Assembly: GCF_001194135.2 (NCBI RefSeq)
Contig: NC_068985.1
Location: 29,462,864 to 29,526,863, forward strand
From: Octopus bimaculoides
Lineage: Eukaryota
Direction of reading: 5' to 3'
DNA length: 64,000 nt
Positions 2,877 to 57,120 of this stretch are shown here, in pieces; position 1 is the stretch's first letter; each line of letters opens with the position of its first letter. Below the pieces are notes generated by a model. The model was not told the origin of the DNA, made no database searches, and saw only the letters and a program-made list of their open reading frames with translations. The position numbers and the translations under genes are program-made.

Positions 2877-3759
2877 AGGGTGAGGTGAATAAACTGTTGT
2901 CTAAATTACACAAAAATGAAAATAACACTGACATCTCATTTTAACGGATGTATTTACCAAAATTACTTTAAAATATCTTGAAATATTAAAGAGTAAATTT
3001 ATTCAATAAAATTGCCATTGGTTTCAACCATGGCCTCCAGACAACTTTAGAATCTCTTGCAACTCTTCTGGATGGTCTCCTTGTTTAAGTTGGTAAATGT
3101 TGCCATAATCCTTGCCTTCAGTTCATCTTTGGTGTAACAAGGAGTTTTGTTGGTGTCTCACTCAACTGTGCCCCACACATAATAATCAGGAGGGTTGCAG
3201 TCTGGAGAGTTAGGTGGCCAGATGTTAGGAGTGATGTAGTCACAGAAATTGTCTAACAGCCACGACTGGGTTCTCCTACTTGTGTGGCATGGTGCAGAGT
3301 CCTGTTGCCAGACATAGGGTCTTCCAGCAGCCACCCTCTTGACCCAGGGCAGCACTACCTCCTCCAGGCACTTGATGTAGGCCTCCGTGTTGAGTCTGAG
3401 GCTTTGTGGGAAGATGACTGGAGGCATAACATCACCATCACTAGTGATCACTCCAAACACCATGATGTTGACTGGATGTCTGATTTTTATCACTCTCGGT
3501 ACATATCCTCAGGCTGCACTGTCTTCAGATTGACATCCAAACACTCTGAAATGTTTGTATTGGAGTTCCAGTACAAATGCCAAGCAGTACAGCATGTAAT
3601 TTCCAAATTTCTGGCAGAAGGAATTGCATCATGGTGCTGTTTTTCTCACAGACGGTGCCCAACTGACCCTACTATATTGTATAGTCGTCAAAATCAAAAA
3701 CAATGTGCATGCACAAAATTAAAAATATGAAATGGCGATAATTTACTCATCACACTCTG
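2876..3759 (-). mobile_element. Internally deleted maT (DD37D, Bmmar1-like) Tc1/mariner transposon
   Basis: ORF 3158-3493 has IMVFGVI, WQQDSAPCH and WPPNSPDCNPPDYYVWG, with 37 residues between the 2nd and 3rd catalytic D. Degenerate TIRs TA|CAGGGTGAGGTGAATAAA and TA|CAGAGTGTGATGAGTAAA. N-terminal remnant at ~3500-3640; in-frame stops elsewhere. Confidence 0.9.
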
Positions 3760-4249: not shown

Positions 4250-5060
4250 CTTTTAAATAACAAGTTTTGGCAGGAAAGAAGACAGAACTCTACTGCCATG
4301 TGGGAAAGGGTAAGGTTTGAAATGAAGAAAAGAAGAGGGAATTTCACATGATGTACACAACGTAAACTATAGATGCACAAGAAGTGTAGTGGAATCCCAA
4401 GCAAGCTGACCAGAAAGCAAGATTGCATATGTAGCAAGTGCACAATTGTAGTTAGCAGTAAGGGTATCTGTAAAATAAATTCATTTAAAGTACTAACCCT
4501 AACTTCTGTTACCAAAATGAAATAATTAGATATGGAGATGGCCATTCTAAAAGCATTATAACCAGAGTAAAAGCTGGATGAAAAATGTTCAGGGAGTTAT
4601 TTAATGGCAACAAAGGATGAATAGTAGATTGTATGATACTTGAGTATGAAGTGCAATGCTGCATGGCAGCTAAACATGACCACTGACTGTGGAAGCTGCA
4701 TGGAGGCTGCAAAAAATAAAACAGGTAAATACACTCTGCTGGGCATGTAATGTTAGTATATATGACTAATGGAGCACAAATAAGCTGAGAGAAAAACTGG
4801 GCATAAGAGGAATCAGTTATAGTGTGTAAGAGAGGAGACTGTGAAGGTATGGGAGTGTGATGCATGTGGAAGATAACAGCTAGGTAAAGAAATGCCAAGC
4901 AACAAGTGGTAGGAATCTATGGAAGAAGCAGACATGAGAGGAAGTGGTTAGAGCTGACTTCAAAAGATTAAATCTTAAGACGGTAGATGAAGGACTATAA
5001 CAAGTGGCAAGGGCCTTCTCTGGAAAAAACAAGTCCAACACATGTAAGGAAGGAACATTT
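4250..5060 (-). mobile_element. Highly decayed LINE RT remnant (CR1/L2 group-like)
   Basis: GC-richer tract whose minus-strand translation resembles LINE RT C-terminal motifs; many frameshifts; a related fragment lies at 5705-5760 on the + strand. Confidence 0.45.
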
Positions 5061-5787: not shown

Positions 5788-6010
5788 CTTTTATCTTTTA
5801 CTTGTTTTGGTCATTAGACTGTGGCCATGCTGGAGCACCACCTTGAAGGATTTTCGTCAAACAAATCAACCCCAGTACTTTTTGTCTTTAAAGCCTGGTA
5901 CTTATTCTGTTAGTTTTTTTGTCAAACTGCTAAGTTACGGGGGACATAAACACACAAGCACTGGGTGCCAAGTGGTGATGGCAGATAAACACAGACACAA
6001 AGATACACAC

Positions 6011-13853: not shown

Positions 13854-14819
13854 TCTTTAATAAAAAATGCATTCTGTGTTTACAAGCAAAAAAGTTTAAA
13901 GATAAAAATCCAACACCTCTAGATCTGAATTCAAAGAGAAACAAAGGAGTTTAGATCCATATACATTCTAATAAAAATTGATTTTGAAGTTCATGAAAGC
14001 AATTTCCTTAACAAACTGAAAGCAGCAAAATGTTAAGATATGCTTATAAAAGAGATCATCCACATACATGTTTTAACAAATCTACATCTTTATTAGCAAA
14101 ACCATATATATTTTTGATACCATTCAGTTATATAAGAAATAAGCAAGTATAGAAAGAAAGCTTTATAAATATTTTTGACAGATACATCATCATCATTTTC
14201 TAGTCTATCAGGAATCAGACTGGCCAATATGAAAGTGCAACCCCAACTGTCTCTAGCTTGTGAGGCCCAAGTTTTTAAAGCCTAATCTGTCATTCCAAAT
14301 ATTCCTTGGTTTAGCTCTTTTCTATCTACTCTGTACTAATAACTTGTGGGACTACCTTATCAAATACACAACATCCATATGCATTTATATCCCTAGTAGT
14401 TTCTCTCTGGACAAACTGACTAATGTTTAGAAACCCAGTTGTTTCCCACCAACTACCTTATGGTTAGTTTTAGACGTTTATATTTGTATGATTTGTGGAT
14501 ACAATTTAAAAGAGCAGAAATTTAATTTGGAGTAGCCCATTAACCTCAGGCTAATAAATTTAATTACAAAATACAACATACTAAGTTCTTTTGAAACTCA
14601 GTGAAATATCAAAAATTCTAATATAGTTTTCTCATACACAAACATACCTAACAATAAGTACACATATAATGTATGACAAAGGACTGCTGTTTTTGGTGAA
14701 GAAAGTCTATCCAACCTATAAAAGCATTAAAAAAAAATGGTTATAAAATGGTGATGGTACTAGTAATGACAGCAGTAGTTGGAATCAATATTGTCTACAT
14801 TTGGAAATCTCCCAACTAT

Positions 14820-15998
14820 TATGAACTTTAGCTGAAATATTTGTACACTGACCAAGACACTCTCACGGAATGGGACAAAATGAGATTTATTTTCCAAAAC
14901 AGACCCCTTCTTCCACAGGTGCTGCAGTACTTGGATCCTATTGGCGAAGAAGCTTTCATCCTGTTGGTCATGAAAGTCATCAACAGTAGACATGACATCA
15001 TCATCACAGCAATACTGATTCCCAGCCAAGTGTTTTTTCATGTTGGGGGATAGATGACAATCAGATGGGGCCAAATCAAGAGAATATGGATCAACCAGTT
15101 CAAATCCACAGTCACATACAGCAGCCATGAGCATTGTCCTGATCAAACAAGACCCCTTTCATCAGTTTTCTTGGGTCTTGATAACCTTTCATGACTGCCT
15201 CAGCAAGTTAGTATACTACTCTCCATTGATGGTGTGGTCCTTTTGATGATAATCAATAAACACAATGCCTTTTGCATCCCAAAAAACTGAGGCCATCACC
15301 TTCCCTGCAGATGACACGACCTTGGCCTTGTTCGGAGCAGGTGAGGAGAAGTGTTTCCACTGCGTGGATTGTCTTTTTGTCTCTGGCTCAAAGTGATGGC
15401 CTCAACACTTATCCTGGGTTAGGAAATGGTTGAGAAAAGCAGCTGGAACTACTTCAAACAATGTCAGATTTTCCTGTGACGTGACCAGGCTGGTGTGCTT
15501 GTGACCAGGTGTCAGAAAATGTGGCATCTACAGAGCAAAAACCTCCATCATACCAAGTTCCTTGTTCAGAATATTCTCAACTCTTCCATGGGATATATTA
15601 ATAGCATTGGCTATTTGATTTATGTTTTCCTTAGTAGTGGCAGCTGCAGGATGTCCAAACCTTGGGTCATATTCAAGATTCTCCCTTCCCCTCCTAAGTT
15701 CAGCTGCCCTCTTTTGTACTGTTGATAAAGCTGGACCATCATCCCCTAATGTAGCATGCACGTCATCATGGATGTCCTTGGGGGCTAAACCCTTTTTCTG
15801 CAGGTACTTAATAACACCATGATGCCGAATTTCATCTATTTTCAAGATAAATCACTACCAGTTACTTTTGAAGTCTTCTTTGAACAGTCAGATGTCAGTT
15901 TACCTGGAACAAAACAATTCAATTACTAATAAGAAGAGCTGAAATTAATGCAAGTAACCTTTCACAGGTGTAGTATCACATTTTAGCCCACCTTCATA
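14820..15998 (-). mobile_element. Decayed mariner (DD34D) transposon, near full length
   Basis: N-terminal HTH region (VIKYLQKKGLAPKDIH...LSTVQKRAAELRRGRENLEYDPRFGHP), WDAKGIVFIDY-like catalytic region and YSLDLAPSDCHL motif; TIR remnants tatgaaggtgggctaaaa (right end) and tatgaactttagctgaaa (left end). Confidence 0.9.
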
Positions 15999-18615: not shown

Positions 18616-19910
18616 AATATATATATAGAGGGTAAAGGGTAAAAGATATATGTATATATATAAACATGCATATTCACAGAAAAATATTCATATATTTACA
18701 TTCACCACATATAGGCAATCTTTCCCTTGCAACAGATCTTATGAAATATTGCTTAGTCACATAAATAAATCATAAAAATCTGATGAAGAGAAAACATTAG
18801 TGAATGACTGAGAGAAAGAAAAAGAAACAAGAATGTTCAAATAAAGTGAAGCCTAAATATTATATTACAAACTTTCAATAGAATGTTATTATATTTATTT
18901 AACCATGATATTGCATATGCCAGACAAAAAAGTCATAAAGCACCAGTTGTGGACCAAGTGTCACAGGTTTTGCATACCCGATTTACACAAAATACATGCT
19001 TTCATAAATGCATACTTATGTCACAATATACATATACACTAGTCATGACAGTATGGACATTAAACGATGATGATGATACACATGCAGGTACACATATACA
19101 TACATGTGCACATGAGAATGTAGATCAGGGACTTTGTTCTATTGACCATTCAACAAAGTTGTATTCAATAAAAGAGTATTATGTGTGTGTGTGTATTTGT
19201 GAAAAAAGAGTGAAATAGTCACTGTTCTTTATTTACTGACAATAAACAATGACCTCTGATGAGAACTTATATAAAGCAGAAACAGCTGAATATATAATGA
19301 TATAATATCGACAATATTGATCTGAAATGTCTGGGATAATTATAATTTATCTAGCAAAAGCAATATTAGATGTTTAAATTACAACTGTCATTATCATCTT
19401 CTTCCAAATCTATGTTAATTCAACATGTTTTGCTTACATATACATGAATTTGTACAAGATTTTTATCTTTTTTGGTTGGGAAAATATGAATTGGAAAAAA
19501 AAATCTTTCCAAATATCCAAACTTTAAGTTATTTCTTCTTTAAGCTATACGATCAAATTTATATCCAACTCAAAACAGAAATATTTCTCAGTTACTTCTT
19601 CCATCAATCATCAATCAGAATGATTAATAAATTACTGGTGCATTAACAGTATTTTGTTTCAAGGCTATGCTGTACTATAGAATATATCTATAAATTTACA
19701 ATCAACACTAGATTTTATAGATAGAAGTAAACAACTTATCTTTACATACAATATTTTCATGTACAGAAAAAAAAAGGATGAACCAGATTGCTTTAAGATT
19801 TTTTCGGTGACCAAGTTCTCTTTAATATTTTTAACTGTCTATGAAGACACTGCTTATAAACCCACCTTTACTTAGGGTTTCTACAAATCAGACAGACTGA
19901 TTAGTATATA

Positions 19911-20126
19911 TACAGGGTGTCCACAAAGTCAAGGTACATGGGGATTAACACCTACTTTAAGAAATTATTATTTCTTATATTTAATTGTTTATGTTATGAT
20001 TTTATTTATTTCATGTACCCACATGGAGATTAACACATACTTTAAGAAATTATTATTTCTTATATTTAATTGTTTATGTTATGATTTTATTTACTCCATG
20101 TACCCAGACCTTGTGGACACCCTGTA
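19911..20126. mobile_element. Tc1/mariner-type MITE with internal ~85-bp tandem duplication
   Basis: TA-flanked TIRs CAGGGTGTCCACAA(A/G)GTC..GGTACATG; the AT-rich core is present twice in tandem. Confidence 0.85.
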
Positions 20127-20469
20127 TATTGCATTCTTGCAACTAGTTCAATTAATTAAATATTAGTACATTATGAATTTTATTTCAATGGTACTGATTT
20201 GCAAATGTAATTTGCATTACATAGAATACTCAGTCATCAATAAAATCTCAACATAGGAATGAAACTATTCTAGCTGATCTCTCTTTTTCTTTCCATGAAG
20301 ATATTTTATATAAAGATAAGATGTTTACATCAGTCTATTATACTATTAAATAGTGTCGGTTAAAATTTACAGATATATTCTGTGGTACAGTAGAGTATGG
20401 AAACAAGATATTATTAACACACTATTGTGTGTGTGTGTGTGCATGCACGTGCACATATGCAAGTGTGCA

Positions 20470-20502
<33 letters not shown>

Positions 20503-20566
20503 NNNNNNNNNNTAACATACAAAAATAAGAGGAATGACCAGCAAAAGTGGACTCCTATATGCAATA

Positions 20567-20697
20567 TACAGGGTGTCGACAAGGTCTGGGTACATGAAGT
20601 AAATAAAATCATAACATAAACAATTAAATATAAGAAATAATAGTTTCTTGAAGTAGGTGTTAATGCCCATGTATCCAGACTTTGTGGACACCCTGTA
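20567..20697. mobile_element. Same MITE family, single core, opposite orientation
   Basis: TA|CAGGGTGTCGACAAGGTCTGGGTACATG ... CATGTATCCAGACTTTGTGGACACCCTG|TA. Confidence 0.85.
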
Positions 20698-20829
20698 TAT
20701 ATATACTAATCAGTCTGTCTAATTTGTAGAAACCCTAAGTAAAGGTGGGTTTATAAGCAGTGTCTTCATAGACTGTTAAAAATATTAAAGAGAACTGGTT
20801 TTAATTGATTAATATCAATTTCTACCCTT

Positions 20830-21852: not shown

Positions 21853-22091
21853 TAAAGATTATTTGCCAACATAACATGGCAGTCCTGGTTTAGGACAAAT
21901 GTTGCTGTAATTTAGCCCCAGGAGGCATCGTCTCCAGCTGGCTATATGACATGATCTGTGTCCTTTGTTTGAAAATATAAAGACACAGATCATGTTGTAT
22001 AGCCAACTGGAGATGATGTCTCCTGGGGCTAAATTACAGCAACATTTGTCCTAAACCAGGACTGCCATGTTATGTTGGCAAATAATCTTTA
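21853..22091. mobile_element. Palindromic foldback/MITE-like element (239 bp)
   Basis: Arms of ~113 bp around a ~12-nt loop; outer 72 bp perfectly complementary, inner part with about 6 transitions; TA at both ends. Confidence 0.85.
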
Positions 22092-23013: not shown

Positions 23014-23101
23014 NNNNNNNNNNNNNNNNNNNNNNNNNNNNNNNNNNNNNNNNNNNNNNNNNNNNNNNNNNNNNNNNNNNNNNNNNNNNNNNNNNNNNNN
23101 N
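23014..23101. other. Assembly gap with duplicated flanks
   Basis: N run; 22920-23013 is repeated at 23102-23207. Confidence 0.95.
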
Positions 23102-28624: not shown

Positions 28625-28870
28625 AGCAGCAGCGACGACAATAACAACAACAATAAATAATAAATGCCCTGATGCAGTACCAGACAGTAGCTCTCATGGC
28701 TTCTGATCTTAACTAACTGGAAGTGTTATTATGTACATTGTTTTGTCTTGGTATAAAAGATGGTTACAACAAATATTCTGCTCAATACCACAGATCTGCT
28801 TGTCAATTGTTTGACCTTAACCAGTTGAGCATGTCCTTTGATGGCTGATGATATGTGCATCTCTGAGCAT
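28625..28870 (-). repeat. Dispersed repeat family E with simple-repeat (TTG/TTA) tail on the minus strand; possible LINE 3' UTR
   Basis: tattctgctcaataccacagat...gaccttaaccagttgagcatgtcc is shared with 34310-34470. Orientation inferred from the tail. Confidence 0.6.
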
Positions 28871-28878
28871 CCGACCCC

Positions 28879-28931
<53 letters not shown>

Positions 28932-28936
<5 letters not shown>

Positions 28937-29263
28937 CACGTGTATAAGAGATGACCACTAGGTGGACATCCAATATGTTAGAAAGTGGTCATCAATGACC
29001 CAACTGCTCAGAGAGCGTTGCCACTAGAATAAGAATAGCCTGGGCAAAGTTCAGAAAGCTCCTGCCTCTACTGGTGACAAAGGGTCTCTCGCTCATTGTG
29101 AAAGGTAGATTGTACGATGCATGTGTACGAATTGCCATGCTTCACAGCAGTGAAACATGGGCCGTGACTGCTGAAGACATGCATAGGCTCAAAAGAAATG
29201 AAGCTAGTATGATCCAGCATATTGGATGTCCACCTAGTGGTAATCTTTTATACACGTGTAATA
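28932..29263. mobile_element. TIR-bounded composite: 46-bp inverted repeats enclosing an RTE fragment
   Basis: Left 28932-28977 tattacacgtgtataagagatgaccactaggtggacatccaatatg; right 29218-29263 is its reverse complement at 44/46. Confidence 0.8.
29001..29217 (+). mobile_element. RTE LINE reverse-transcriptase C-terminal fragment, uninterrupted frame
   Basis: CSESVATRIRIAWAKFRKLLPLLVTKGLSLIVKGRLYDACVRIAMLHSSETWAVTAEDMHRLKRNEASM is the typical RTE post-RT region. Confidence 0.9.
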
Positions 29264-29439
29264 CAATTTTTTCTGAATTTTCAGATTTTTTTATATGCTA
29301 GGCACTTGGTTTTAAATTGAATTAATATTCAATTTATCACCCTATCTATATAAATAATATATATATATAGCATCATCATCAGCATTGTTTTTGTTGTTAT
29401 CATCATCATTTAACATCCATTTTCCATGCTGGCATGTAT

Positions 29440-30978: not shown

Positions 30979-31362
30979 ATGAAAGGTGGGCAACAATGGT
31001 TGCTCACCAAAAGTTGTGGGCGAGGAGGAGGACCTTCTGGCTAAGGTGGAAGGGCGTCCTATTCCAGTGGCCTCCAAAAAAAAGAAGAAAAAGAAGAACG
31101 GATCACGGCCTGAGCCCGGTAGTGCACCGCCGGCGTGTCCCGAAGCTCCGTTGGTGGGAATTGTGCCACGAACGGAGGAAGGCCTGTCGGTGGGAATTGT
31201 GCCGTCGACAGTAGAAACTGAAGGCTCAACCTATGAGGAGGAGGAATTTGTAGTCCTCTTCCACAAGGGAGGGTCCGTTGAAAATGTTGTAAAAAAGTTT
31301 GCCAGGAAGGGTCGGACGAGAGGGATCCTAACCTGTACCAAGGACCCTAGGTGGCCTCCACA
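30979..31362 (+). mobile_element. CpG-rich coding-like insertion; possible retroelement ORF1 N-terminus, cut by a gap
   Basis: Frame open 30983-31362 (poly-K, Pro-rich and acidic blocks, VGIVP twice); the nearest ATG at 30979 is out of frame by 1 nt; composition differs sharply from the flanks. Family not recognised. Confidence 0.4.
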
Positions 31363-32241
31363 NNNNNNNNNNNNNNNNNNNNNNNNNNNNNNNNNNNNNN
31401 NNNNNNNNNNNNNNNNNNNNNNNNNNNNNNNNNNNNNNNNNNNNNNNNNNNNNNNNNNNNNNNNNNNNNNNNNNNNNNNNNNNNNNNNNNNNNNNNNNNN
31501 NNNNNNNNNNNNNNNNNNNNNNNNNNNNNNNNNNNNNNNNNNNNNNNNNNNNNNNNNNNNNNNNNNNNNNNNNNNNNNNNNNNNNNNNNNNNNNNNNNNN
31601 NNNNNNNNNNNNNNNNNNNNNNNNNNNNNNNNNNNNNNNNNNNNNNNNNNNNNNNNNNNNNNNNNNNNNNNNNNNNNNNNNNNNNNNNNNNNNNNNNNNN
31701 NNNNNNNNNNNNNNNNNNNNNNNNNNNNNNNNNNNNNNNNNNNNNNNNNNNNNNNNNNNNNNNNNNNNNNNNNNNNNNNNNNNNNNNNNNNNNNNNNNNN
31801 NNNNNNNNNNNNNNNNNNNNNNNNNNNNNNNNNNNNNNNNNNNNNNNNNNNNNNNNNNNNNNNNNNNNNNNNNNNNNNNNNNNNNNNNNNNNNNNNNNNN
31901 NNNNNNNNNNNNNNNNNNNNNNNNNNNNNNNNNNNNNNNNNNNNNNNNNNNNNNNNNNNNNNNNNNNNNNNNNNNNNNNNNNNNNNNNNNNNNNNNNNNN
32001 NNNNNNNNNNNNNNNNNNNNNNNNNNNNNNNNNNNNNNNNNNNNNNNNNNNNNNNNNNNNNNNNNNNNNNNNNNNNNNNNNNNNNNNNNNNNNNNNNNNN
32101 NNNNNNNNNNNNNNNNNNNNNNNNNNNNNNNNNNNNNNNNNNNNNNNNNNNNNNNNNNNNNNNNNNNNNNNNNNNNNNNNNNNNNNNNNNNNNNNNNNNN
32201 NNNNNNNNNNNNNNNNNNNNNNNNNNNNNNNNNNNNNNNNN
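31363..32241. other. Assembly gap (879 N)
   Basis: N run. Confidence 1.
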
Positions 32242-34130: not shown

Positions 34131-34309
34131 ATATATATATTCTTTTAAGTTTTTTTTAATTATCTAGTAATCGAAGGAAATGACTACTATTCCCTTCAAA
34201 CTTTGCTTTTGTACCTTGGACATCAATGTTTTGAAACTGACCTATTTTCCATTACATTTCAAACACATTCAGTGCTGAGTTGCTGAAACAGAAATATCAT
34301 TATAGAAGA

Positions 34310-34470
34310 TATTCTGGTCAATACCACAGATTTGTTTGTCAGTTGCTTGACCTTAACCACTTGAACATGTTCCTTAGTGGCTGATAATATATGCATCTGT
34401 GACCTTGAGCAGGAGTAGTGAGGGAGCATCATACCCATGTGTTGAGAGGGATTCTTTAGGATTTGAATAA
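34310..34470 (-). repeat. Dispersed repeat family E fragment
   Basis: Homologous to 28770-28865. Confidence 0.65.
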
Positions 34471-37446: not shown

Positions 37447-40400
37447 AAAATATACACACACACACGCATATGTAGACATGCATGTCCACACACGCCCACA
37501 GTATCAATCGTTTATAACCTTAGTTTATATTGTCATTTGTTAAGGACCTTTGAGACTTGTAATATAAACCTTCACCAATCAAAGTTTGCTGACTCCATAA
37601 AGAGATTTATACCTGCTTAACAATGAAAATTAACTACACTGATCTGATGTCTTTGTTTCTGACTATTTTCCTAAGGTTTAAATATAATAGAGGTATCTTT
37701 ATATACTTTTCCAATATCAGATTATACTTAAAAGAAAAATTTTTAGTTACTCTTTTGGAAAATAAAAAGTAAATGTGGCACCTGAAATACAATCAGATAC
37801 ATAGCCATTTACTAACTAAACAATGCAGTTGATGGAATAACCATCTTCAGCAGTGTAATTGAAAGCATGAGGATTTCTTTGGGGTAATCATGAATAACAA
37901 TGAAGAATCACATATAGCCTTTCCCAGAGGACTTTTAGATGAAGATTATTACCAAACTTCAATGGTTTGGTAGTGCAATGGATATCAGCTCTGTGTACTG
38001 AGGATGTCCATTCAGCATCTGCATCACATGTACATTCTAACAGCAAGTCCCATTTATATTTGTTTGTCCATTTTGTATAATATTGTACTACATTGTGTGA
38101 CTTTGTAGGATGATTTTTGTAATTCATTGCAGTTTCAGAAGAAATTATAAAACTGTACAATGACAGGTTGAATGCTTTGCTGTATTTCGTTATGTGCTCC
38201 AGCATTTCGAGTTCAAGTCATGTCTGGATTTACCTTGCTTTTCTTCCTTCCTCTATCTTTAATTAGTGGATTTGTGCCAATATAAGAAATTGTTATTGAA
38301 ATAGCTATTATGCTCTCACTGTGTAATAAGAAAAAAGTCTGAACATTACACAATGTTAGCAGCTACTTAAAAAAATAGAAGAGAGAAAAGTGCTATTAAC
38401 AAAAATATTTAGAAAATAAAGTACATTACATGACTGTATCACACTTTGAAATGGCAACCATTCAATACAAAGTAGATGATATAATGGAGGAGCCAGGAAA
38501 TAAACAGAAGACTATCTTAGATTAAGATCTAATGGTGGTAGGCAGTGACATGCAAAATAAAAACGGTAATGTTACAGCAGCCTCAGCAAAAAGTAAGTTA
38601 TCACAGTACAGTTTTATCAGGTCAATTATCATTCATATTTATTTGCTTATTTTTTTTCCAAAAAACTATTTTACAAAATTTCAAAGCAGAATTTGTCAGA
38701 AAAAATATGTATTGCATTTTATTTAGATTTGGTCTGAGCTCTATCCTACTTTGTTGGGTAAAATGGATTTTAATTTCTAACAAGTAAAAAAATAAAGCAA
38801 ATAAAAACAACAGTTGTTTAAATTACTCTATGATACATTACAAATACATATTCTTTTTAAAAACTATTATTTCCTATCATTTTAGTTTCAATCTTCTTCA
38901 TAACCTTATTTATAATAATTTTAAGCATCGTATACAAGTGTTTAAGAGATGAGACAGAACATTTAGCAGTATAACTCACTGATAAAAATCACCAAGATAA
39001 GATATTTGAAAAGTAGATTCGATTTAAAGTATTGAGAATTAATATTTCCAAGGTTAATGGTTAACTTAGCCTTTCATCTTCCAGAGTTGATAAGTTAAAT
39101 ATCAACGGTATATTAGGTCAAGTGGATCAAACTCGTATTTAATTCATTGAGTTTCTGATCACACCTCCAAACACATTATGATTTATCAACACCACCATAG
39201 CAAAAATGTGTTCAATAAGAAATAACTATAGCTATTGAATAACTATAGCAGAAATATTGTTAGAATAGTTGAAAATAGACAATTTCTCAACAATAGCAAC
39301 AAAAAAATATTTAGAAAACTGTGAATATTTTCTGTTTTTTCTTATCTTGACTAGGCCACTGTTACACATCACAACTTGCAAAAGGAAATATGTAGAGAAC
39401 CTCTTGAAATAGATCACTGAGAAAGCTTATTAGTGTTTTTATAACTTCATTTCAATACTTTTCTGGCTTCCCTAAAAGTGCTAAAAGTGCCACCATCCAA
39501 TATGTCTCCTCAATTTCTCATTATTCTTACTTCCTAATCCAACATATTGTTAATCATATATCCATTTACATGAATAAATGCAAGTAAAGCTTAATATCCA
39601 CTTATCTCTTACATTAACATAGTTATGGTTACAGAGCCAGAAACTTCGCAACACAATAGATTTCTCCAAATATCAAAATCAAAATCCTGATAAGTAAACT
39701 GTGAGGCATTCAAGTATCACAGCTCAATGATACCAATTATACACGTCAACTAGTTTTCTTAGTTTGAAAATTTCTCTATAGTCTATGATTAAGTTAAGCT
39801 GACCATTTTTAGCAACACTTAACACACCATGAGTAATAGCTAGCCATTTCTTCTTCCTTCAGGTTCAGAAACATCTGTACATTTGATTCATGTTATATAT
39901 CATTAACTTGATGCATAAACATGAGTCAATTTGTTATGACAAGGTGTGAAAAAGACTATTTGTATAATCTTGCATTAGCAAGATTTAACAGTTAAATATT
40001 TAAGGAAACAGTTTCAGTTCCATATAACAGAGTAGGTTCAATACAGAAATTTATGCATTTACAAACTAGTGCAATATGAAGGTTTGAGAAATTATTGAGT
40101 GACATATTTCACTGTTAAAATTCCATAGATATTTCTAGGATGTTGTGCAATCAATTTCAATTATATTAAATATACAATTAAATGCAATAATTTTTCAAGT
40201 CTAAAAGTAGAATGAACAAATACATTCTTACAATGGCTGTATGGTTGTTTAAAAATGTTTCTAAAATGTTGCTCAAAAAAAAAAAAAAAAATTCAAAATA
40301 GGAAAATAAATAATATAGTACTTATGCAAAACAAATGTTAAATATTAGTTTCTTTGAAGCAGATAGAAAGTTCAGTGTTTTGTGAGGAGAGCTACATAGT

Positions 40401-43651: not shown

Positions 43652-44060
43652 AGGCACAGGAGTGGCTGTGTGGTAAGTAGCTTCCTTACCAACCACATGG
43701 TTCTGGGTTCATTCCCACTGCGTGGCACCTTAGGAAAGTGTTTCTACTATAGCCTTGGGCCGACCAAAGCCTTGTGAATGGATTTGATTGACAGAAACTG
43801 AAAGAAGCCCATCGTATATATGTATGTATATATGTATGTGTGTGTATATGTTTGTTTGTCTGTGTTTGTCCCCCCAACATCGTTTGACAACTGATGGTGG
43901 TGTGTTTACGTCCCCGTAACTTAGCGGTTCAGCAAAAGAGACTGATAGAATAAGTACTATGCTTCCAAAGAATAAGTCCTGGGGTCGATTTGCTCAACTA
44001 AAGGCGGTGCTCCAGCATGGCCGCAGTCAAATGACTGAAACAAGTAAAAGAGTAAAAGAG
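43652..44060 (+). mobile_element. SINE family A, full length, low divergence
   Basis: aggcacaggagtggctgtgtggtaagtagc...ggttcattcccactgcgtggcacc...caagtaaaagagtaaaagag. Confidence 0.95.
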
Positions 44061-44069
44061 TGTCTACAT

Positions 44070-44490
44070 ACATCCCATTTGATCCAGTTGCCCATATGCA
44101 TATGCCCGCTGGTTTATTTTGCATGTAGCGATCAGAATGATCCCTTTTATGATACCCTTCTACAGGCTACCTTAAAGATGAGTAGCAATGACCTCATCTT
44201 TGCGGCTGGAGAGTTTAATGGGCATGTCGGATGGCAATCCGGTATCTTCCATGGTGTTCACGAGGGCCATGGAAATGGTTCCCGAAACGAAGAGGGAACT
44301 AGGCTACTGGAGTTCTGTGATGCATGCAACCTATTAATCTGCAACACTAACTTCAGGAAGCCAGACAGCCACCTGATCACCTATCAATCAGGCAACTCTA
44401 CTAGCCAGATTGATTTCATCCCCACCAGACAGCAGGATGCAAGGTTGGTTTTAAATACAAAGACCCTCCCTGGTGAAGAATGTACCCCAC
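44070..44490 (+). mobile_element. RTE LINE apurinic-endonuclease fragment
   Basis: AGEFNGHVG...HGNGSRNEEGTRLLEFCDACNLLICNTNFRKPDSHLITYQSGNSTSQIDFI are APE motifs of RTE elements. Confidence 0.9.
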
Positions 44491-44569
44491 CAGCACAGAC
44501 TACTAGTGCTCATCATTACCATCATTTAATATACATTTTTTTTATGGGTCAGATGGAATTTTTTGATGC

Positions 44570-44880
44570 AGATTCTCTATAGCGAGATGACCTTTTTGTT
44601 GCCAACTCTCATCTGTTTCTAAGCAAGGTAATATTTTCTCATAGCTAGATATATGCTTGTATGATGATGATTTTCATTTACTACCATCATGTAATGTCTA
44701 GACAAGGATACACACAAACACACACACACAATGTGCGTCATTCAATTTCTGTCTACAAAATCCACTCACAATGATTTGATCAGCTTGGGGGCTATAATAG
44801 AAGACTCTTACCCACAGTACAACAAAATGGGACAGAACACAAGTCTACATGATTGGGAAGCAAGCTTCTTTACCACTGTG
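44570..44880 (-). mobile_element. SINE A2 (family A head + alternative body)
   Basis: A-type head and CORE-like part at 44740-44880, (CA)n, then a body similar to 29440-29670. Confidence 0.7.
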
Positions 44881-56690: not shown

Positions 56691-56771
56691 ATATCATCTT
56701 AATCTGGGCTTTATTTGAGCATATTTAAATTCAATGTATCATTTTGTATCAAGATGCTATTTGAATAAATC

Positions 56772-56985
56772 CAGGGTACAGCAGAAAGGTTGCCCCATTT
56801 CAAAGGTCAACAAAAAACAAACACATGAAGATGCATGAAAAATCTTTGTATTTCTACGAAGTTCATTAAATGCCATGTTTTTCTTTTTTTTCTGTTTCAG
56901 GTAGTACCCACCATGGCCTGTTGTGTCTTCATGTGTTTGTTTTTTATTAACCTTTGAAATCAGGCAACCTTTCTGTCACACACTG
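56772..56985. mobile_element. MITE with ~60-bp TIRs
   Basis: cagaaaggttgcc..atttcaaaggt.aa.aaaaaacaaacacatgaaga is inverted at both ends; CAG start; TA at the right end. Confidence 0.8.
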
Positions 56986-57120
56986 TATATGTCTACATTT
57001 CATCTGATCACCTTGTACAATCACAACATTACTGTAGTTTCTTTTTGTGCTTGTGTGAGCTGAATTTTTCTACAAATCCAGACCATTCTGCATCTTTGGA
57101 ATGCAATTTGTATTATTAGA

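Follow-up and report, generated by a model that had tools for sequence, protein, structure and literature searches.

Two inverted-repeat arms of 46 bp bound a 332-bp element in the AT-rich 64-kb window (the whole stretch of Octopus bimaculoides DNA analysed here; 32.6% GC, six N gaps). The left arm (28932-28977, + strand) reads TATTACACGTGTATAAGAGATGACCACTAGGTGGACATCCAATATG and the right arm (29218-29263, - strand) reads CATATTGGATGTCCACCTAGTGGTAATCTTTTATACACGTGTAATA. The two are complementary at 44 of 46 positions, differing by one G/A and one G/T, and are the same over the inner 23 nt. Each ends outwardly in TA and carries CACGTG within a perfect 10-bp palindrome, TACACGTGTA. Together they enclose 240 bp (28978-29217), confirming the preliminary description of the arms. 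Dinucleotide shuffling of the window, repeated 100 times, yielded no comparable pair (chance expectation zero), and the arm edges are sharp, complementarity being lost immediately on the inner side and past the outer TA. As single-stranded DNA the 332 nt folded at -72.9 kcal/mol, compared with -35.1 +/- 3.9 kcal/mol for shuffles (z = -9.7). Between the arms lie, from left to right, a 27-bp spacer (28978-29004, +), a LINE fragment (29005-29214, +) and a 3-bp junction, CAG (29215-29217, +).

The LINE fragment is a sense-strand piece of an ORF cut at both ends, for which the clade label "RTE" is carried over from the first description. Its 70 codons contain no stop and read CSESVATRIRIAWAKFRKLLPLLVTKGLSLIVKGRLYDACVRIAMLHSSETWAVTAEDMHRLKRNEASMI; the open frame itself runs from 28999 to 29298, of which 29005-29214 and at most 29002-29217 (70-72 stop-free codons) displays protein-level LINE homology. 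The first homology search gave a sole UniRef entry, A0A0L8FQH9 of Octopus bimaculoides, with 77% AA identity, and because a LINE query was expected to match thousands of copies, octopus genomic ORFs are evidently missing from the protein collections. When 1.84 billion representatives were searched exhaustively with HMMER, there were 1644 matches at E <= 0.001, the best of which are 73-83% identical, with alignments ending at query AA residues 72-77. The arm-encoded tail and the LINE-to-arm junction were found in none of 150 representatives among the matches listed (1644 in total). Comparison of 151 retrieved proteins with the element placed the ends of 120 of 162 strong HSPs at 29214-29223 and the starts of 64 at 29005. 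The longest relatives have RVT_1 and a PHD finger N-terminal to the matched stretch. In the nearest long relative, P0027, the match (541-609 AA residues) follows an RVT_1 domain (239-439) and a PHD finger (455-498), which positions the fragment about 100 AA residues downstream of Pfam RVT_1 and past the PHD finger. By this alignment the fragment is assigned to the post-RT C-terminal region of the LINE ORF, not to the RT domain proper. The preliminary description of an RT C-terminal segment thus stands as to the stop-free LINE ORF piece but not as to the RT domain, since the piece lies beyond both RVT_1 and PHD in P0027. As a side observation, P0005, a 746-AA predicted protein, consists of about 10 tandem copies of a unit of ~75 AA, within which the LINE C-terminal segment described here is found (query AA 33-72), a case of a LINE ORF piece amplified as a tandem repeat in another genome.

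Relatives continue for about 100 residues past the matched stretch, as in P0003, which is encoded by L001 (ENA metagenome contig ERZ23499511 scaffold_43232, 1-1269). At the DNA level, 29005-29232 aligns to L001 458-680 with 75% nucleotide identity. L001 ends in ATATATATATGTATAT and then CATCATCATCAT, as octopus-type repeats of the window do, and is probably host (mollusc or cephalopod) DNA within the metagenome assembly. Compared with P0003 and L001, the fragment is missing about 100 AA of ORF, the 3' UTR and the tail. No further parts of the same LINE were found beside the element on either strand, and no target-site duplication for a LINE insertion was seen. Judged by its sequence, the fragment is not an ordinary target-primed insertion, as an internal ORF piece without a 3' end would not be the direct product of target-primed reverse transcription alone. 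The preliminary description had argued the same from the missing 3' tail, and its case is borne out by the absence of the ORF end, 3' UTR and tail and of LINE parts nearby. It had also placed the end of the LINE piece mid-ORF and exactly at the right arm; LINE homology does end mid-ORF and within a few bp of that arm, with the HSP ends at 29214-29223. The only other copy of the LINE family in the window (4385-4990, +) contains many stops and is not the donor, because its nucleotide identity is only about 74%. Elsewhere in the window, a 207-AA ORF at 43959-44582 (+) gave an Exo_endo_phos_2 (endonuclease-reverse transcriptase) match with E = 3.9e-5, below the Pfam cutoff. RTE and Dong-R4 have been reported as recently active LINEs in Octopus (PMC9115989, PMC13282606).

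The two junctions between arms and LINE piece differ in length and character. The spacer on the left is neither arm nor demonstrably LINE, and LINE homology does not reach significance to the left of 29005 (p about 0.3). Its AGTGGTCATC (28984-28993) complements GATGACCACT of the left arm (28950-28959) without a mismatch; by a rough post hoc estimate, the probability of such an exact 10-bp inverted match by chance is about 1e-3. The spacer also contains GGTCAT-CA-ATGACC (28987-29000). On the right, where CAG separates the last secure LINE base from the arm, the DNA alignment with L001 has a 5-nt gap (AGCAT) and resumes about 15 bp into the right arm, with TTGGATGTCCA facing TTGGATGTGCA of L001, which encodes RWMC. 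P0002, the closest protein relative among the matches listed, has WMS there, like the window in a shifted frame. In shuffle tests p was about 0.02 over 30 bp at the junction and 0.09 over the entire arm, values uncorrected for about five tests, and we take them as a weak hint that LINE homology may run about 15 bp into the right arm. If this continuation were real, part of the "TIR" would be LINE sequence and the left arm must have been copied from the right.

Several other matches of this kind were rejected. The arm compared with the whole of L001 gave a best local p of 0.03-0.07 within the stretch coding for GRPRKTW; the order is structurally meaningless, and the match is attributed to chance. 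The left arm showed no similarity to the element's own LINE piece on the two strands (p = 0.69 and 0.87). A match of the right flank to the reverse complement of the LINE piece (p = 0.019) and a 14-AA minus-strand match over 29246-29287 were both set aside as noise, because they map the same bases to different LINE regions. The occurrence of spurious matches of similar "significance" lowers the trust to be placed in the right-junction p of about 0.02.

Immediately left of the element lies a (TA)n microsatellite (28879-28931), which with the first bases of the arm reaches 28935, so that the tract has about 27 units, interrupted by a single TG. On the right the flank is unique sequence. TA stands on both sides of the element, the left one being the last unit of the (TA)27 tract, and by eye the sole compatible target-site duplication is a 2-bp TA, which can be read in two ways. 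With the putative duplication at 28932-33 the TIR would start TTACACG (TA|TTACACG...CGTGTAA|TA), and with TA at 28935-36 and 29259-60 it would start CACGTG (TA|CACGTG...CACGTG|TA), the second reading yielding 5'-CA...TG-3' termini. Such CA/TG ends are usual for DDE transposons. Duplications of 8 bp (hAT), TTAA (piggyBac), TWA (PIF/Harbinger) or 3 bp (CACTA) did not fit by eye, and one of 5 bp (Transib) fits only given a central mismatch. The TA duplication is almost weightless as evidence, because the left flank is a TA microsatellite and TA, being palindromic, merely lengthens the inverted repeat. Further out, an unclassified repeat at 28756-28866 stops just before (TA)27, which might be its tail; a second copy (34292-34402, 81% identical) ends differently, and apart from the microsatellite this flank does not resemble the 3' UTR of L001. 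The flanks bear a CATCATCAT...TTTAACATCCATTTTCCATGCTGGCATG motif that we take to be an octopus SINE.

No second copy of the arm was found in the 64-kb window on either strand using exact and 3-mismatch patterns, blastn at word size 7 and an exhaustive ungapped scan. The best other arm-like match reaches at most 28 of 46 positions, so that the window holds no partial copy at 61% identity or more. An 18/20 match at 38933-38952 has no inverted partner and was dismissed as chance. The arm core and the outer arm, made degenerate at the two variable sites, gave no match in scans of metagenomes, prokaryote genomes and viral contigs, collections that hold no cephalopod genomes and are silent on arm copy number in the source genome. 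Likewise, an arm-peptide query returned no match from the protein database, which evidently lacks octopus genomic ORFs. An Rfam scan of the entire window and a literature text search for the arm sequence also gave no match.

At least three other TA-flanked inverted-repeat elements are present in the window. One is a 239-bp hairpin (21853-22091) with 113-nt arms, 95% complementary, and a 13-nt loop; it begins TAAAGATTATTTGCC and ends ...AATCTTTA, and being bounded by TA it looks like a palindromic MITE. Another is a palindromic element of the form TA-CAGGGTGTCC / TA-CAGGGTGTCCACAAAG...CTTTGTGGACACCCTG-TA, present in two copies at about 19905-20127 and 20559-20703, the former with an internal tandem duplication. 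These copies sit in a large inverted structure (19814-20796) around a 10-N gap (20503-20512), whose 99-bp flanks (19814-19912 and 20698-20796) are 98% complementary and extend outside both palindromic copies; the structure represents a larger long-TIR element or else a duplication in inverted orientation that takes in a MITE. A further inverted-repeat element (56752-57005, also placed at about 56768-56996) has arms of ~80 nt, 79% complementary, and starts with TA-CAGCAGAAAGG / TA-CAGCAGAAAGGTTGCC and ends with GGCAACCTTTCTG...CTGTA-TA, ends that suggest a Tc1/mariner-like affiliation.

Traces of transposase were also noted. A remnant at 3158-3493 (-) gave a weak DDE_3 match below the Pfam cutoff. 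Two ORFs on the minus strand (14760-15146 and 15528-15845) display mariner-like features by eye, namely a DLAPSD.HL motif and an HTH-like N-terminus, and matched no Pfam entry at E <= 0.01. In Octopus vulgaris, the recently active TIR group reported as most numerous is Tc1-Mariner (PMC13282606). The TA-flanked elements, combined with the transposase remnants, raise the prior that a TA-bounded 46-bp inverted repeat is the shell of a transposon. In addition, the window contains, 1.7 kb downstream of the element, a stretch of 50-53% GC against a 33% background (30986-31362, +), in which an open frame, beginning MGNNGCSPKVVGEEEDLL, is cut off by the N gap that starts at 31363. The stretch resembles a gene's first exon and has no homologue in the protein database.

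The window shows the arms, a LINE piece that is cut and isolated, and how closely the one fits the other. From these we infer that the element may be a small non-autonomous TIR element that targeted TA and in which about 210 bp of LINE ORF took the place of the interior, the reading we favour while giving it not quite an even chance. On this reading the arms would be the ends of a cut-and-paste DNA transposon, probably of the Tc1/mariner-like kind. This reading is preferred because the inverted repeat is long, near-perfect and sharply bounded with TA at either end, and because the second reading of the ends gives CA/TG termini. It is further favoured since LINE homology begins 27 bp and stops 3 bp from the arms with the rest of the LINE absent nearby, since the captured 210-240 bp matches the 224-bp median of animal Pack-TIRs (PMC8277862), and since the other TA-flanked inverted-repeat elements in the same 64 kb make the base rate high. 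The 10-bp arm motif also argues for it, a third, inverted copy being present in the left spacer. TIR transposons typically carry such subterminal repeats at their ends, and GATGACCACT, found in both arms and inverted in the spacer, would be a candidate transposase-binding repeat. Against the favoured reading, no second arm copy, whole or partial, is present in the window, no transposase with the arm termini was found, the left TA belongs to the (TA)27 run, and the termini are unlike the TA-CAG starts of the other TIR elements of the window. The alignment with L001, which beyond its 5-nt gap covers about 15 bp of the right arm (p about 0.02), points the same way.

A transposon shell of this kind could have acquired its LINE filler through abortive gap repair with filler capture. 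The parent element would first have been excised or broken, and repair synthesis would have proceeded from the kept ends, about 73 bp on the left (46-bp TIR and 27-bp subterminal DNA) and about 49 bp on the right. The polymerase may then have taken a nearby or abundant LINE copy as its new template, copying part of the interior before rejoining. The product would either have remained immobile at its birthplace, as in transposition-independent gap filling, or have been moved later by a transposase recognising the arms.

Local template switching could account for the arms and spacer equally well. The main rival, possible if somewhat doubtful, is a single event of this type at the (TA)n tract, an inverted duplication next to an old LINE fragment, with the element never having been a transposon. 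Here, the nascent strand would have jumped strands about 285 bp downstream, copied 46 nt reverse-complemented (right to left arm) and returned, next to a LINE fragment that had first been 5'-truncated and subsequently 3'-deleted. Long AT dinucleotide runs are fragile and form cruciforms, and the (TA)27 tract immediately adjoining the left arm is a plausible site of fork stalling or breakage, with the outer TA/TAT of the arm usable as junction microhomology. The lack of another arm copy in the window is in line with this model, and the 10-bp hairpin between arm and spacer could be a second small switch of like kind. The similarity of TTGGATGTCCA to TTGGATGTGCA, together with WMS in P0002, is what would be expected were the right arm the original sequence; however, the p of about 0.02 is uncorrected for about five tests and may be noise given the mutually inconsistent matches of similar significance, one of them at p = 0.019. 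Moreover, the model does not predict a 5-nt gap exactly at the inner boundary of the repeat and leaves the coincidence of both LINE-fragment ends with both arms unexplained. Short events making inverted copies or hairpins are a documented mutation class (PMC5453318, PMC8794818), but a 46-nt copy from about 285 bp appears, on our reading, longer and farther than the tens-of-bp events treated there.

It is improbable that the arms are two independent copies of an abundant one-sided repeat end, such as a SINE or LINE tail, inserted in opposite orientations around an older LINE fragment. Inverted pairs of SINE copies are indeed common in the window (e.g. 989-1082 with 5790-5883), the (TA)n past the left arm can be read on the minus strand as a retroposon tail, and the L001 LINE likewise terminates in ATATATATATGTATAT. 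However, the arms have identical inner and outer boundaries (46 of 46 nt), which is not expected of independent 5'-truncated insertions, they match neither the L001 3' UTR nor other repeats of the window, and the right arm carries no microsatellite tail. A mis-join in a gapped short-read scaffold is very improbable: the six N gaps do mark the window as part of a scaffolded draft assembly, but the nearest ones (23014-23101 and 31363-32241) are far from the element, the differences at 2 of 46 arm positions suggest that two genomic copies have diverged, rather than that a single sequence was used twice, and 332 bp is short enough for read pairs to span.

Returning to the TIR element with LINE filler, we consider it unlikely that a cephalopod DNA transposon which is or recently was active has the arms as its ends and that the composite belongs to a multi-copy family, with the same or varied fillers. 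If it did, the element would show clearly, in a cephalopod, that retrotransposon coding sequence and possibly host DNA can be spread by a cut-and-paste element, and Pack-TIR biology would then reach into the molluscs. Fillers that vary between loci would point to a general capture system in octopus, a lineage whose TE activity is under active discussion. Octopus is known for heavy RNA editing, and a multi-copy element would provide an added source of 46-bp double-stranded RNA stems near genes. If single-copy, it would be one more template-switch repair scar in a TE-rich genome, and a caution that MITE finders will call such structures transposons. The locus would be of moderate interest only if the element were multi-copy or its cargo varied.

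Among known systems, the closest in architecture are the Pack-TIR/Pack-TYPE elements, including plant Pack-MULE and Pack-CACTA, which similarly hold a foreign segment of about 220 bp between TIR ends. The preliminary description had called such elements best known in plants; they are also documented in animals, with 370 Pack-TIRs in 100 genomes and a median captured length of 224 bp (Tan et al. 2021, PMC8277862). The gap-filling or template-switch origin proposed here is shared with them, and a single copy, the number seen in the window, is common in animals, where single-copy Pack-TIRs mostly formed without transposition (PMC8277862). On the other hand, Pack-TIRs are defined as non-TE sequence flanked by TIR TEs (PMC8277862), whereas the cargo here is a LINE ORF piece, that is, TE DNA, and for this element no parent TIR family, donor copy or second copy was identified. 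The earlier label "Pack-type" in its strict sense is thus to be dropped, and because the captured piece is a LINE, we describe the element as a chimeric non-autonomous element and not as a strict Pack element.

Similar to Tc1/mariner-derived (Stowaway-like) MITEs, the element is about 330 bp long, has no coding capacity of its own, and carries long near-perfect TIRs and TA ends. It thus falls structurally among MITEs (below about 800 bp, non-coding, with TIRs), its sole ORF being the truncated LINE frame. A MITE family is defined by multiple copies, and the 64-kb window holds one copy of the element; its termini are TTACACG or CACGTG, in contrast to the TA-CAG starts of the neighbouring elements, and its interior, unlike that of a MITE, is recognisably LINE-derived. 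Compared with an ordinary 5'-truncated insertion of an RTE-type LINE, the fragment is likewise a sense-strand ORF piece with 5' truncation, but lacks the 3' part of the ORF, the 3' UTR and the tail, and hence an intact 3' end. Short-range template-switch mutations and quasi-palindrome conversion (Loytynoja & Goldman 2017, PMC5453318; PMC8794818) likewise produce a reverse-complement copy and a new hairpin. Such mutations need neither transposase nor target duplication and the repeat tract at the junction fits, yet the filling of the inter-arm space with LINE is left unexplained. On any reading the element is of a kind already known, as Pack-TIR architecture, MITE structure and template-switch hairpins are all documented.
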